From Selaginella moellendorffii (Eukaryota; Plantae; Lycopodiophyta), in assembly GCF_000143415.4 (NCBI RefSeq), contig NW_003314376.1:466156-530155 (forward strand): a stretch of 64,000 bases of DNA, given 5' to 3'. Below are positions 38,901 to 57,780 of the stretch, piece after piece (position 1 is the stretch's first letter; the number at the start of each line of letters is the position of its first letter). A program made the translations under genes and the position numbers. Below the pieces are notes generated by a model, which saw nothing but the letters and a program-made list of their open reading frames with translations, ran no database searches and was not told the origin of the DNA.

Positions 38901-40023
38901 GTTTTAAAAGAAATCAAGGCCACCTCAGCGAGAACTCTGGCTGCATCTCAAGTTGCAGGGTTTCTCTACGGCTTCTGCTTCTTTGCACTCTACAACTTCT
39001 ATGCCCTCTGCATCTGGTATGGAGGAACACTACTGGTAGCAAGAAGAATAACCTTCCAGAATTTTGTGATCTGCTACAGCGCTCTGGTGTCCGCCGGGCG
39101 AGCACTAGCAGAGACCGCAGCAGCAACTCCAGCAGTGGCTCATGGCTTGACAGCAAAAGCATCGGTCCTCGAGATACTCAACAAGAAAACAACAGTTTCC
39201 GACGTAGAAATGTCTGGAAACGAAGACAACATGCGAGGCGAGGTGGAGTTTCGCGACGTCAGCTTTACGTATCCCTCGAGCATGGAAATACTGGTGTTAA
39301 AGAACTTCAGCATTAAAGTGGACGCAGGCCAGACTGCAGCATTGGTTGGAAGGAGCGGGACGGGAAAATCGACAGTCATAGCTCTGCTGGAGAGATTCTA
39401 CGAACCAATAGCAGGCACAATTCTCCTAGACGGCAAAGACATCAGGAGCATCCACGTTCACACGCTCAGGAAACAAATGGCACTGGTAAACCAGGAGCCA
39501 GCTTTGTTCGCGATGAGCATCAGAGACAACATAGCGTATGGCCTAGACAACGCGACGGACGCGGAGATCATCGAAGCAGCAAGCGTAGCAAACGCACACA
39601 CATTCATCAGGTACCAAAGAACTCTCCAAGAAAACTCTCTAAAGATGGATGCATGGCAGTGCTCTCCCGGAGGGATACGAAACAAATGCCGGCGAAGGAG
39701 GCGTCCTTCTCTCCGGAGGACAAAAGCAACGCATAGCAATCGCTCGAGCCGTGATAAAAAAGCCAGCGATTCTTCTCCTGGACGAAGCAACAAGCGCTCT
39801 CGACGGTGAGTCCGAGCGCACCGTCCAGCAAGCCCTGGACAAGATCGTGCACGGCAGCACGGCAAAGACGACGATCATCGTCGTCGCTCACAGGCTCTCG
39901 ACGATCCAACACGCAGATCTCATCGCAGTGATGGAGAATGGCGGGGTTTCGGAACAGGGCAAGCATCAAGAGCTCCTGGCCAAGAATGGCCGATATTTCG
40001 CTCTGATCCACTCTCAGCTCTAG
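35986..40023 (+). CDS. ABCB: Full-size ABCB (MDR/P-glycoprotein) transporter, 9 exons: 35986-36168, 36238-36289, 36348-36517, 36561-37018, 37072-37301, 37352-37662, 37713-38567, 38628-39610, 39660-40023
   Basis: TMD-NBD-TMD-NBD layout. Walker [10 protein letters not shown] and GRSGTGKST; signatures [14 protein letters not shown] and [14 protein letters not shown]; Walker [11 protein letters not shown]. All introns are GT-AG and keep the frame. Confidence 0.93.
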
Positions 40024-40183
40024 CAATCGAGGAGACGATCGATCCAGACGTACCTAGACATGCTAGCGCCTTGCCGCCTTGCCGCCTTGCCGCCTTGCCG
40101 CCATAAACCCTAAGTAGCTACATTGTGATAGAGATTGATACATATCATCGTTACTCGTTAGGGAGCTATATACTTCTTCCATT

Positions 40184-40623
40184 CTATCGAGCGTGAGGCT
40201 TCCAGCACGAAGACATCTCTTTGACATGCGACGAGTAGGGATCCTCGGGACCATTTGGAACGTCTCGATCTGGCTTGGCGACCACCGCCGGAGGATCATT
40301 CGATGATGGAGCGGTCTGGAAGTCTCTCCCGCCGCAGCCGCTCGTCCTGTGCTTCATCCGGTACTGCTCCGGATCGTCAGGGCCGGATGGAGTCTCTCTT
40401 TCGGGATTGGAAACCATCTTCCTCGACTGGACTGGTCCTGCACCAAGAGAGAACAGCCACACCCGTTAGTATCTCGGATCATCTCGAGAAAAAATCGAAT
40501 TTTTTTCTTCTTTTTTTGCTCTGGAACGAACGAACCTCCTCCAAGGCAGCGAGTCATGAGTGGAAAAAGCAGGAGGAGGATGATAGCCACAACACGGTGG
40601 CTGCTTTTGGCGGATGGAGTCAT
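40184..40623 (-). CDS. Secreted peptide precursor with two divergent CLE-like motifs, 113 aa; exons 40623-40536 and 40437-40184
   Basis: Exon 1 encodes a signal-peptide-like MTPSAKSSHRVVAIILLLLFPLMTRCLGG. A 98-nt phase-1 GT-AG intron with a CTAAC branch site follows. Exon 2 contains RKMV, RETPSGPDDPEQY and RDVPNGPEDPYSSH. Confidence 0.7.
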
Positions 40624-41239
40624 GGCTTTGGCAGTGATGATGGCCAAAGAAACAGCACAGGAGCTAGCTTAATGATTCGAAGCACAGCACAAGTTACACA
40701 GAGCAACGCATCATTCACACCTCCAAGCACAGCGTCACAGAGAAAAAAAAAAGTTAAAAAGAATCACAGAAAATGGAGGAGCAGAATCATACAACTCTAC
40801 ACTTAAAAACCACTCAACTCTCGTCCAACGATCGACAAAGATCTCTCTAGAACACAAGCAGACCTCAACAAAACGGCCCTTTGCCACTCCCACTCCACAA
40901 AGATCCCGCAAGAACACGCCGTATAAATACCCGAGCGACGATGAGACCTTTGCTCGAGGTACTAATCCGTGCTTGGTTTCTTCGTTTCTTCCTCTTTCGT
41001 GTCTTGTCTTGTCCATCTTTTTAACACACACTTACACACACACACACAGCGCACAAAGCCTTTTGTTTCCAATTCCAACACGGCCAGACAGACACACACA
41101 GAAAGATGGAACACAGCTTTTGCATTCATTCCTGATTTGAGAGCTCTCTCGTTTAACGCATGAGGGATGGATTTAACGGAACGAATTGGGCAATCAAAGC
41201 ACAGAATCGTTGGAAGAATAGAAGGAGTCACAGACAAAA

Positions 41240-41283
41240 TGGTGGCGGTGGTGGCGGTGGCGGCGGTGGCGGTGGCGGTGGCG
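41240..41283. repeat. (GGC/GGT)n trinucleotide repeat
   Basis: ggtggcggtggtggcggtggcggcggtggcggtggcggtggcg. Confidence 0.9.
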
Positions 41284-42174
41284 AAGTTTTGGTGGTGGCG
41301 AGCAACGTAGCAGCTTTCCAGGCAGACAAAACTTACAGGAAAGAAAAGCTCGCTCCTGCAGAGGAGACAAGCCTCCACAGATTCCAAATGATTCCTGCCC
41401 GGAGCTTGCGAGCCTGCTTGGCTTGGATACAAAAAATCCCACTCGCATCCCACTATAACAAAAAAAAAACCAGTAACGATCAAAGAAGAACATTTCATGG
41501 CTTGTGGAAAGCCTACAAAAGCAAGACAACCAACTTGTTTTTTTCTAATGTTGTGTCGTGTGGCTTCTTTTGGAGAATCAATGTCTCTCGTAGATTCTAC
41601 TGCGGAAACTCCTTGTTTAATCCCCGCAATGTTTTTCTGTGAGGCAATGGCATGGAATCTCTGGGGCGAGGAGATCGATGCGTGCTGTCTGTCTGCCTGT
41701 CTCTCTGTGTCGAGTTGCTTGCATTATGCTCGAGATCCATGGCGTTGCTCGCTGTGAATTCTTGCGAAGAACAAACCTTTGCTCCCGGACTTGTTGATGG
41801 GTGTTTCTATGATTTTCGTGGAAACACTAGTAAACAATGGGGAATTTGAAAGCACAATCCAAGGATTCCCTATGATTGAGCTCACGTTCCACCCGTCTTT
41901 ATCACTTGGACTGTTCAACAGCCAAAGTTTCTTCCATATTCCAAAGTTCTCTTGCATCTTTCTTGTCGATTTTTGGTACTGTAGAACTACCAACAATGTC
42001 GTGACATAAGCTGGTGCTATATTGTAATTTTTCAAAAGTCATTATATACATATTTCAGAAGTTCCAAAATTGATTTTTTCTTTTCTTTTTTTTCTTTCGA
42101 ATCTTCTTTTGCCTGGCATATTCCCAAAATGTAAAGGACGAGAAAAAAACGGAGAATGAAGCTCGTTTTTTTTT

Positions 42175-42768
42175 TCAGTTCAAATCGGGAATGAGCATGG
42201 ATGGAGGCGTCGACCTGTGATGTAAAGGATCAGGGCCCCCAGGAACATATCGATCCGGGTGGTCGATTTGATGAACTTCGCGAACTTCACTGGATCGATT
42301 CACATTCACAAGTTTGCGATCATCACCCCCGTGGTGATTCTCAATTGCTACCGCTGCTGCTGCTGCTGCTGCTGCTTGGTACTCGAGCATCTTTCTTCCC
42401 ACAAGCTGATTGCTCTCCGGGTGATCCCTGCGTGGTCGCGGTGGGATCCTCTGGCAAGAAGAACTCGTTAGAGTCTCCAAGAGAAGGAAGAAAACTTTCA
42501 AATGCTTTCACAAACCTGCTGGTGGCGGAATCGCGTCCGGAAATTTGGCACATTTCTTGGGAAAGAAACGCAGCCGGGACAGGGGCGTGTCACCGCCAGC
42601 AGCTTCCGAGCCGAGATCCCCCGAGAATCGAAATCTAGAAACCACCAAAAACCAATCAATCAAGCACGAGATGACCCAAAAGAGCACACCTGTAGTGACC
42701 AAGAGGTAGAAACAACACACGAAAGCCATCCAGAACAGAGCGCTGTGGATCATCGCAGCGCGCGACAT
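42175..42768 (-). CDS. CLE: CLE (CLV3/ESR-related) peptide precursor, 157 aa; exons 42768-42690, 42634-42516, 42450-42175
   Basis: Signal peptide MSRAAMIHSALFWMAFVCCFYLLVTT; two GT-AG introns (55 and 65 nt) keep the frame; ARKLL motif. Canonical 12-aa CLE motif RYVPGGPDPLHH at 42217-42252. Confidence 0.9.
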
Positions 42769-43892
42769 GGACGATCGATCCAGAAAAACCAGAAGAGGAA
42801 AAGGAATGATCGATCAAGAAAAACAGAGAAGCTCCAGTACTTTTGAGTCAGTCTTGGCCAGTCCACTCTCCCTTCTTCTTCTTCGACTTAACAAGCATGA
42901 CCAAATCTATGGAGCAATCTAACAGGCTTTATAGTAAAACACTGGAATTTGGGAACTCGTGACGAATACAAGGAAATAATTAAAATAAATACCCCAACTA
43001 ATTCACTTTAAAAGCCTTTTTTTTTCCTTTAAACTGAATGTAAGATTAGGAAGGAACTGATTACCGACCGATATAGTTGGTCTAGATTAGTTCGAGTCCT
43101 ATCAACCACACGCTCCAATCCATCATTCCAAGGGTTTTTAGTATTTCCAATTGCAGGGTGGCGGCAACTTAAGAGCCCTAAATCGGTGCATGCATGGTGG
43201 CGGTGACGAGACATTCCCTCATTTGGGGTGTGCGTGCCACCAGAGTTGATTTCCAAATGTGGCAACCCCCGGGTGCATCATTTGTACACTCCATGGTACA
43301 TGGAGTATTTTTACTATGTCCAAGGTTCACACATTCCAGGCTTTAATAGCTTGGGTGCTAATATGATGGCCGCGAATATGTGTCCGGCCGTAAAGGAATA
43401 ATTTCCATATCCGAAAATATCAATCCTATTACGCCTCATCATTTCCGTCCCTGGAATAATCACCCTTGATCACGGGAAGAAGAATCGGAGAATTTCTCGT
43501 TAGTCTTGCTCTGATACAAAGCTGCCAAGGCATAAAAGAATCCAATCAATCAGTTCTCTCAGAGAAAAGCTCTCGAGTCTCTCTCGCGCGCACAAATACG
43601 TACCTGTCGATTCTTTGGAACGGTGAAAACTTATCTGATTGTTGTTCTTTATTGAGTAGCGTTCTTGAACAAAAGTACTTCACTCTATTGTCCGGTGAGT
43701 TGCCCTTTGACGTAAGCATGATCAACTCTAAAGCACGAATCTTTCCATAAAGAAGGGATATAAATCATCACAGATGTGAGTGAGAGAGAGAGAGAGAGAG
43801 AGATATTCCAAATGTTTAAGCTTTCTGTGTGCTCAACAGCTAAGGATGGATTAGTATCAATACTTACAGTTTCTGGAACACGATACTGGTTA

Positions 43893-57003: not shown

Positions 57004-57780
57004 TCATGGAAAGCTTGTGTCAATCCTGTGATGGATGGGTTTGCGACCAGTCGGAGCGTTTCTCTCCGGCTCAACATTTATCATCTCGTTCTTGTCACCA
57101 CGATTGATCGCGAGCGTGTGCGGAAATACCGATCCCTCACCAGCAGAGAGGGAATCCGGGAACAAAGATGGAGCTGGATGCCCGTTCCTGATCATCGCTT
57201 TCTGGCAGGCCAAAGACGAGGAGAGCTCTTGAGGCGGTGGAGGAGTGGGACCAGCGAAGCCATTGTAATGGGGATCACAGTAATCATCAAACATGGGACC
57301 GATGCTTTGTGGAGCCGGAGACGCACCGATTTGCCCCGCGTCGTCCTTCGCAATGCTGCCCTGGTACTGCTTTGGGTCGGATACGGTGCCGCTTGGAACT
57401 TCTCTTGGCTCATGCTTCACAAGCTCAGCGCCGGTTTGAAACAACTTTCTGGGCACTCCTCGCTCCTGATGGAGGCAAAATCGTTTAACACAGAGCCATT
57501 CCCTGGTTAGAAGACAGAAAAGAGAGATTTATCATTGAAAGCCTTGCCTTGGGACCAAGAAGAGAGCGATCGAGCGATGCAGTCGCAGTGGAAGCGGTCG
57601 CAATAGAAGCGCCCAGAAGCAGCATTGAGACGATACTGACAATCGTGAACATCTTTCTCCGGCCATGATCATCAGAAAGAGAATGAGAAGGAAAAAAAAT
57701 CTCTCTAGCAAGCGGTGTTTAGCATGGCTGCTTGGAGAAAAGCCACTTGTGTGTGCTTCACGTCGATTATCTTCGACCAT
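57004..57780 (-). CDS. Putative secreted multi-motif peptide precursor (two CLE-like motifs plus PSY-like DY motif); tentative exons 57780-57548 and 57502-57004 (~243 aa)
   Basis: Hydrophobic FFFLLILFLMIMAG near the N-terminus. Two same-frame ORFs are joinable by a 45-nt AG|GCAAG...CTAACCAG GC-AG intron. Contains RKLF, REVPSGTVSDPKQY, DYCDPHYNGFAGPTPPPP and RNAPTGRKPIHH. The 5' structure is uncertain. Confidence 0.6.

Follow-up and report, generated by a model that had tools for sequence, protein, structure and literature searches.

A 64,000-nucleotide stretch of the Selaginella moellendorffii genome (RefSeq assembly GCF_000143415.4, contig NW_003314376.1, positions 466,156 to 530,155 of the forward strand), referred to below as the window, carries on its minus strand a spliced and expressed gene for a small secreted-type protein, LOC112342690. 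An initial annotation made from the letters alone had proposed a hidden gene at this site, with two repeats resembling CLE peptides, and the exon, intron and motif coordinates that it gave all agree with the sequence. The gene was not hidden, however, since RefSeq models LOC112342690 on both haplotypes: joining 40623-40536 to 40437-40184 on the minus strand gives XP_024520632.1, letter for letter, a protein of 113 amino acids that RefSeq names 'uncharacterized protein'. The coding part of exon 1 (40536..40623, minus strand) starts with the ATG of Met1 at 40623, comprises 29 codons plus the first base of codon 30, and matches RefSeq. It is followed by a phase-1 GT..AG intron of 98 nt (40438..40535, minus strand), with a TACTAAC 26 nt upstream of the acceptor, and by the coding part of exon 2 (40184..40437, minus strand), which holds residues 30-113 and a TAG stop (40186-40184). 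The N-terminus of the 113-residue protein, with basic K6 and R10, a 13-residue hydrophobic core (VVAIILLLLFPLM) and then TRCLGG with the small residues C26 and G28, was judged by eye to be a secretion signal of the kind expected of a CLE precursor.

A protein search with exon 2 alone (40187-40435, minus strand) returned a single cluster of two 113-residue RefSeq proteins of S. moellendorffii, XP_024520632.1 and XP_024531451.1. The latter comes from the other assembled haplotype (GL377580.1), where it is the allele of this gene; the DNA of the two haplotypes is about 96% identical over 12.9 kb, and the open reading frame (ORF) is intact on both. XP_024520632.1 was used in the later comparisons. 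The expectation that standard CLE searches would probably miss the gene agrees with its absence from the listings checked: LOC112342690 is not among the eight S. moellendorffii CLEs in the supplement of PMC7552357, and the cluster of its protein at 90% identity or more contains none of the SmCLE proteins (BAH accessions) deposited in GenBank.

Exon 2 encodes two CLE-like motifs. Motif A with its P-E lead-in (40361..40408, minus strand; N40-Y55) reads NPE-RETPSGPDDPEQY, the core RETPSGPDDPEQY lying at 40399-40361 and Arg43 at 40399-40397; motif B with its P-D lead-in (40226..40276, minus strand; K84-H100) reads KPD-RDVPNGPEDPYSSH, the core RDVPNGPEDPYSSH lying at 40267-40226. Both keep Arg1, Pro4, Gly6 and Pro7 and then, after one extra residue between GP and DP, Asp-Pro. 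When the whole window was scanned in six frames with a loose CLE-core pattern, the only matches were motifs A and B and the neighbouring CLE, and with the stricter pattern [RH]-x-x-P-x-G-x-[DN]-P-x-H-[NH], again in all six frames, only the neighbour at 42217-42252 matched. Motifs A and B are not canonical 12-13-residue CLE motifs: a gap of one residue is needed to align D-P, and they end in EQY or YSSH, without His11 and His/Asn12. They do resemble the canonical neighbour HPD-RYVPGGPDPLHH, including the acidic P-[DE] before Arg, and lack the terminal HH/HN, as the initial annotation had remarked. The acidic residue before Arg1 is a feature shared with the R-type CLEs of S. moellendorffii that were compared (HPD|R, QPE|R and ASD|R). 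Two further elements complete the conserved part of the protein, namely the linker Cys64 (40334..40336, minus strand), which is conserved in SmCLE7 according to the alignment and BLASTP, and a third block, VKEMSSCWKPH (40193..40225, minus strand; V101-H111), which holds Cys107 and after which the protein ends within two residues.

Transcription was assessed with transcript contigs of four public runs from four studies (X1, X5, X6 and X8), placed on positions 39000-43000; the run table only guesses 'RNA?', and contigs of this kind cannot yield expression level, strand or transcript ends. The 98-nt intron, which the initial annotation had wanted confirmed by RNA-seq, is removed in the X1, X6 and X8 contigs, which come from three studies. 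The joint at 40436>40535 skips 98 bases, and its ends read CT..AC on the plus strand (GT..AG on the minus strand); with the 1-base ambiguity of the joint (cut +1), this is exactly the predicted intron. X8 also splices the 49-nt intron of a convergent ABC transporter gene and X1 splices both introns of the canonical CLE gene Sm411648. Since these introns of the ABC gene and of the neighbouring CLE are spliced, and the intergenic DNA at 41.3-42.1 kb is uncovered, X1, X6 and X8 are RNA-derived. LOC112342690 is covered in all four runs, Sm411648 only in X1. The contigs place the transcript at approximately 40054..40883 (minus strand), the 5' leader reaching to at least about 40883 and the 3' end abutting the convergent ABC transporter gene. 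At 40241, 40271 and 40393 the contigs carry variant letters that agree with the other haplotype, and therefore both alleles are transcribed. X8 has 40271G without the variants at 40241 and 40393, which suggests a third allele. No indel was found within the LOC112342690 coding sequence (CDS) in the contigs of any of the four runs.

Several minor features of the transcribed region were recorded along the way. Two tiny upstream ORFs, ATGATTCTGCTCCTCCATTTTCTGTGA and ATGATGCGTTGCTCTGTGTAA, lie in the 5' leader (40624-40883, minus strand), where a poly-T/indel polymorphism at 40739-40741 also varies between runs. A short (GGCAAGGC)n microsatellite occupies 40060-40095, in the 3' region common to LOC112342690 and the convergent ABC gene. 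Every contig breaks at 40054/40083, which looks like an assembly-graph junction and not a transcript end.

Homology searches connect LOC112342690 to an accepted CLE gene. An exhaustive phmmer search with XP_024520632.1 against 1.84 billion representative proteins (E <= 0.001) gave two matches only, the allele and a partial RefSeq model misnamed 'flocculation protein FLO11-like' (E 6e-4). The 90% cluster of this model holds BAH56538.1, 'CLAVATA3/endosperm surrounding region 7', which is SmCLE7. By BLASTP, the LOC112342690 protein is 36% identical to the front half of SmCLE7 over 91 amino acids (E 3e-12), and the alignment is colinear through motif A, the cysteine, motif B and CW..KPH. An SRK[LM] box is present in each protein; motif A (NPERETPSGPDDPEQY) aligns with QPERLIPSGPSDPKQY, Cys64 with a conserved cysteine, motif B (KPDRDVPNGPEDPY) with HLEREVPTGPEDPF, and the tail block VKEMSSCW-KPH with LKDFVACWNSAVGKPH, that is, with LKDFVACW(NSAVG)KPH. 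In motif A, 11 of the 16 residues of NPE-RETPSGPDDPEQY are identical to SmCLE7 QPE-RLIPSGPSDPKQY, and the motif also aligns with HEP-REVPSGTVSDPKQY of a third gene near 57 kb. KPD-RDVPNGPEDPYSSH of motif B aligns with SmCLE7 HLE-REVPTGPEDPFQR, GPEDP being identical. A chance ORF is ruled out by the splicing, the identity to RefSeq and the homology to SmCLE7.

SmCLE7 (BAH56538.1; partial RefSeq models XP_024543134.1 and XP_024527273.1) thus has PER..PSGPxDPxQY, Cys, [DE]R[DE]VPxGPEDP[YF] and CW..KPH in the same order as LOC112342690, and its full layout is signal peptide, SRK box, motif A, Cys, motif B, CW..KPH, spacer and canonical CLE. The two proteins differ at the C-terminus: SmCLE7 runs on into Ser-rich SSKDSIPVP repeats and ends with the canonical CLE RQVPSGADPIHH, the motif given for Sm86322 in PMC7552357, whereas LOC112342690 ends two residues past KPH. 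Motif A differs as well, with Ser as the extra residue and DPKQY in SmCLE7, against Asp as the extra residue and Glu in place of that Lys in LOC112342690. Going by these alignments, LOC112342690 is a shortened relative of SmCLE7 in which the CLE motif survives only as two conserved variants, each longer by one residue. Because motif A is nearer to motif A of SmCLE7 (11/16) than to its own motif B (7/16), the A/B duplication is older than the gene duplication. The SmCLE7 gene models have blemishes of their own: the RefSeq models are incomplete and carry the wrong name 'flocculation protein FLO11(-like)', and the start of BAH56538.1 is an internal ATG. At the SmCLE7 locus (GL377618.1, L002 5880-6030), translation from an in-frame ATG further upstream would make the signal peptide ahead of the phase-1 intron more complete (MALELHSLILFFFMALLCCYALESR).

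Gene structure agrees with the protein alignment. The intron of LOC112342690 is in phase 1, within the codon directly before P-V-Q-S-R-K. In SmCLE7 (GL377618.1), exon 1 ends ...GAA TCT CGA G|GTAAG and exon 2 continues after ...TTGCCAG with AT CCA GGA ACT TCG CGT AAA, which likewise places a phase-1 intron within the codon directly before P-G-T-S-R-K; over this junction the deposited BAH56538.1 reads ESR-DPGTSRK. The catalogued CLE gene Sm411648, which lies 1.55 kb upstream of LOC112342690 on the same strand, has a phase-1 intron after the signal peptide too, eight codons before A-R-K-L-L. Given the shared intron phase and position, the tandem location and the sequence homology, LOC112342690 belongs to the CLE family by descent, and the CLE derivation proposed in the initial annotation holds, LOC112342690 being a paralogue of the front half of SmCLE7. 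Common descent with accepted CLE genes is seen in the BLASTP match (E 3e-12), the intron position and the distance of 1.55 kb from Sm411648.

Selection was evaluated by the Nei-Gojobori method on exon 2 of LOC112342690 and SmCLE7, with the motifs defined as 16 residues of A and 14 residues of B; these boundaries were taken from the initial annotation and were fixed before the comparison with SmCLE7. In the motifs, pS was 0.64, dS 1.41 and dN 0.27 (dN/dS 0.19), with 19/30 residues identical; in the rest of exon 2, pS was 0.62, dS 1.30 and dN 0.92 (dN/dS 0.71), with 14/49 residues identical. The difference in identity was significant by Fisher's exact test (p 0.004). Neutral drift of the LOC112342690 lineage over half of the synonymous distance would give a dN of about 0.65, above the total motif dN observed. 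In a simulation with 0.65 substitutions per site, the probability of no stop was 0.04, the mean motif identity was 28% and the probability of at least 19/30 identical residues was below 5e-5; with 0.3 substitutions per site, the joint probability was 0.02. Since the duplication, purifying selection has acted on the motifs, while the rest of the protein has drifted.

These values bear on whether LOC112342690 is a decaying CLE duplicate that has lost its CLE peptide and is transcribed without function, for which the initial annotation had named two signs: a locus that is unspliced or unexpressed, and motifs no more conserved than their flanks among orthologues. Neither sign was found. The gene is spliced and expressed, and with paralogues standing in for orthologues the motifs have a dN/dS of 0.19 against 0.71 for the rest. 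The canonical CLE of its relatives is indeed missing from LOC112342690, and the haplotype differences within the CDS, 4 non-synonymous and 2 synonymous, fit neutrality. The replacements are conservative (L27V, V32I, M37L and T45A, the last at motif position 3), and both synonymous changes lie in motif B. Set against this, the ORF is undisrupted in both haplotypes and in every transcript contig, and splicing is correct in three studies. A long-term pseudogene is ruled out by the motif dN/dS of 0.19 at saturated dS together with the drift simulation. Decay would require that function was lost very recently; the haplotype pattern is compatible with such a recent loss of constraint. We consider decay very unlikely.

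The best explanation overall, to which we give a probability of roughly 0.55, is that LOC112342690 encodes a CLE-descended precursor from which the selected motifs A and B are released as extracellular, non-canonical ligands. The protein would enter the secretory pathway and would then be cut before each Arg, after the conserved P-[DE]. Such a P-[DE]|R site would suit an Asp/Glu-directed subtilase; Asp-directed subtilases process plant peptide precursors, as described for SBT3.8 with CLEL6/9 in PMC7162652. Each motif would carry hydroxyproline at Pro4 and Pro7, as CLE peptides do, and the basic residues after Tyr55 of motif A (RMKHR) could be trimmed. Two products would result, A with 13 residues and B with 14 (about 25 if B extends as far as KPH), and they would act extracellularly on a subfamily-XI leucine-rich repeat (LRR) receptor kinase. 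For CLE, IDA and RGF peptides, the LRR receptor kinases recognise the C-terminal His/Asn through their RxR motif (PMC7007523). Because the A and B peptides have no His/Asn end for this motif and their register is shifted, they would probably not be ordinary agonists of CLV1, BAM or TDR. The likeliest options would be a different receptor, modulation, or competition for the receptor or for the processing proteases, in keeping with the different receptor or antagonist role that the initial annotation had suggested.

The conservation outside the motifs invites another interpretation. The initial annotation had treated the two peptides as the unit of interest; both motifs are conserved, but so are the two cysteines and the [VL]K[DE]...CW..KPH block. 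The A-B block might therefore be a pro-region that has been conserved, or else a small secreted protein with a disulfide bridge, one that guides, for example, the processing or secretion of a SmCLE7-type precursor; alone in LOC112342690, the block could serve as a protease decoy or competitor or have an unrelated extracellular role. Such a function would account for conservation that reaches Cys64, Cys107 and [VL]K[DE]...CW..KPH, beyond the CLE-like motifs, and for motifs without a His/Asn C-terminus, and in SmCLE7 the block does occupy what is usually called the variable pro-domain, ahead of the canonical CLE. Yet the best-kept residues are the CLE ligand core (R, P, G, P, DP) and the P-[DE] cleavage context, twice over, which fits released peptides better. 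Nor did AF2 give a confident fold for residues 28-113 (pLDDT 55.8, pTM 0.16), albeit from a shallow alignment of five rows; the model has two short low-confidence helices, after each motif, and the missing fold is compatible with a disordered peptide precursor. We know of no CLE pro-domain function of the guiding or scaffold kind, and we regard this alternative as doubtful.

LOC112342690 was compared with the closest known peptide systems. Like a canonical R-type CLE of the CLV3 type (Sm411648, RYVPGGPDPLHH), it has a small secreted precursor with an acidic residue before Arg1 and R1/P4/G6/P7 followed by D-P, and it shares with Sm411648 the phase-1 intron after the signal peptide, an RK[LM] box and the tandem location. 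Unlike canonical CLEs, it has the extra residue between GP and DP, no His11 or His/Asn12, and two motifs of which neither is canonical; it also has conserved cysteines, which CLE peptides lack. Multi-motif CLE precursors are known, SmCLE12-15 being said to encode five H-type motifs (PMC4659896); there the repeats are canonical 12-mers, whereas in LOC112342690 both repeats are variant and no canonical copy is left. A Pfam search (including CLE_plant, PF27922) gave no match to XP_024520632.1 at E <= 10; since the last exon of Sm411648 was blank too, this is uninformative. A feature search of the ESM Atlas returned only weak neighbours (<= 0.86), in plant small-peptide clusters that included CLE_plant, GLV1-2 and IDL5.

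Membership in three other families was rejected. The PIP motif of IDA/IDL peptides is tabulated as ..PPSGPSxRHN in PMC8462819. LOC112342690 shares with IDA/IDL the PSGP core, and motif A of SmCLE7 reads IPSGPS, but there is no terminal HN, Asp stands instead of Ser after GP, and one residue more follows PSGP; PSGPDDPEQY and PNGPEDPYSSH, having neither Ser after GP nor HN, do not match P-[PS]-[GA]-P-S-x-x-H-N. Tyrosine-sulfated peptides (PSY, RGF, CIF and PSK) were excluded by the Asp-Tyr (DY) sulfation rule as applied in PMC8462819: there is no DY, Tyr55 follows Gln (EQY) and Tyr97 follows Pro (DPY), and neither is motif-initial. The defining feature of CTNIP/SCREW peptides is a pair of cysteines, spaced 9-11 residues, downstream of the PxSGP core (PMC9191895). 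Cys64 and Cys107 do not fit it, since they are 42 residues apart and flank motif B.

SCREW/CTNIP peptides, the ligands of HSL3/NUT, are nevertheless a precedent for an IDA/CLE-like PxSGP core joined to a longer, Cys-containing C-terminal part, and this subfamily-XI receptor reads the PVPxSGPN/S core and then a disulfide loop (PMC13261660, PMC9191895). The functional unit of LOC112342690 could accordingly be one long C-terminal ligand of about 25 residues, motif B plus tail (R87-H111), read in a SCREW/CTNIP-like manner. Motif B and the tail are conserved as a single stretch and the protein stops right after KPH, as such a ligand would have it; however, R87-H111 has one Cys only, the conserved partner lying 42 residues upstream, before the core, and the equally conserved motif A is left unexplained. 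No sequence similarity of LOC112342690 to SCREW/CTNIP was seen in any search made. This alternative is unlikely, and the composite SCREW/CTNIP peptides serve as an analogy only, since the layout differs.

To return to the release of A and B as separate non-canonical ligands, several points weigh against it. Selection was read from 30 codons of a single paralogue pair with saturated synonymous sites, and its signal is not cleanly separable between the two lineages; the haplotype differences of 4 to 2 are indistinguishable from neutrality. The cysteines and the CW..KPH block, which are also conserved, are not part of the CLE-like motifs, so that the selected unit, on the strength of the alignment, may be larger than two linear 13-14-mers. 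A and B lack the C-terminal His/Asn common to the known subfamily-XI ligands named in PMC7007523. Finally, no orthologue was found beyond S. moellendorffii, either by the exhaustive phmmer search or by word-index searches with exon 2, SmCLE7 residues 12-105 and the alignment profile, in collections poor in lycophytes. The protein cluster of LOC112342690 holds no transcriptome-assembly members despite the expression of the gene. Since the collections seem to be without lycophyte transcriptomes, the missing outside relatives were not read as lineage restriction.

A more far-reaching form of the released-ligand reading is that a lycophyte offshoot of the CLE/IDA superfamily, so far undescribed, has A and B as its mature peptides and a subfamily-XI receptor of its own, LOC112342690 being a dedicated precursor freed from the canonical CLE. 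We put this forward tentatively, as a possible case. The gene model and SmCLE7 are already known; no description of the variant motifs, of their conservation or of a CLE-family gene that keeps only them was found in the searchable literature, with the motif strings looked up in full text as well.

The origin of new peptide-hormone classes and of their receptor specificities is an open question in land-plant evolution, and whether CLE and IDA are homologous or convergent is discussed in PMC8462819. If the offshoot reading is true, the locus would be a living example of a new ligand class budding from a multi-motif hormone precursor, with SmCLE7 still co-delivering the canonical CLE. If A and B are ligands, they would form a tractable peptide pair for studying how a one-residue insertion and the loss of the His/Asn anchor re-route receptor choice, and for asking whether peptides of this kind act as antagonists of canonical CLE signalling. 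Otherwise, the block would offer the rare example of a CLE pro-domain that is conserved and has a function.

The window holds two further members of the cluster. The canonical CLE gene Sm411648 (42175..42768, minus strand) is one of the CLEs catalogued in the PMC7552357 supplement. Two introns, 42689-42635 (55 nt) and 42515-42451 (65 nt), divide it into three exons, and X1 splices both. Its peptide HPD-RYVPGGPDPLHH lies at 42252-42217; this is the canonical neighbour (HPDRYVPGGPDPLHH at 42.2 kb) with which the initial annotation compared motifs A and B.

The third paralogue is the 57-kb gene (57004..57652, minus strand), with motif A' REVPSGTVSDPKQY at 57405-57364, a degenerate middle and a CLE-like RNAPTGRKPIHH at 57063-57028. 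The DPxQY ending that the initial annotation had found in common with this gene is present on the same strand at 57378-57364, as SDPKQY (57.4 kb). The same annotation had taken a one-residue acidic insertion as the mark of the class. The residue is Asp or Glu in LOC112342690, as it stated; in motif A of SmCLE7 it is Ser and in the 57-kb gene Val-Ser, where Thr also replaces Pro7. Because the extra residue varies among paralogues, the family signature is GPxDP and not GP[DE]DP.

Both ends of the 57-kb gene align colinearly with SmCLE7 (REVPSGTVSDPKQYQGSI with RLIPSGPSDPKQYQNSI, and EPERNAPTGRKPIHH with QPERQVPSGADPIHH), which makes A-B-CLE the likely ancestral layout; the arrangement A...CLE is carried by two of the three paralogues. 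Judged from these layouts, the simplest history would be an A-B-CLE ancestor from which LOC112342690 lost the tail, that is, the spacer and the canonical CLE. The three genes could then be viewed as stages of one process, with variants plus canonical CLE in SmCLE7, a degenerating middle in the 57-kb copy, and variants only, selected and expressed, in LOC112342690. Within the 57-kb gene, an in-frame join of the signal-peptide and motif exons across 57466-57547 (minus strand) seems to need a GC-AG intron (AAG|GCAAGG ... CAG|GAG); the sole nearby GT donor appears to lead to a frame that ends in a stop.

Two observations concern neighbouring loci. In the convergent ABC-B transporter gene, which ends at 40023 on the plus strand, the 49-nt GT..AG intron at 39608-39656 is spliced out only in X8. 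The X1, X5 and X6 contigs read through it, and retention shifts the frame before the ABC signature motif; either intron retention is common, or these contigs come from pre-mRNA. On the other haplotype (GL377580.1, L001 6300-7300, corresponding to about 43.4-44.3 kb of the window), a modelled gene of 121 amino acids looks spurious, lying over PPR-pseudogene remnants, with PPR-like peptides such as NVISWTTMLAAY on the strand opposite the model.

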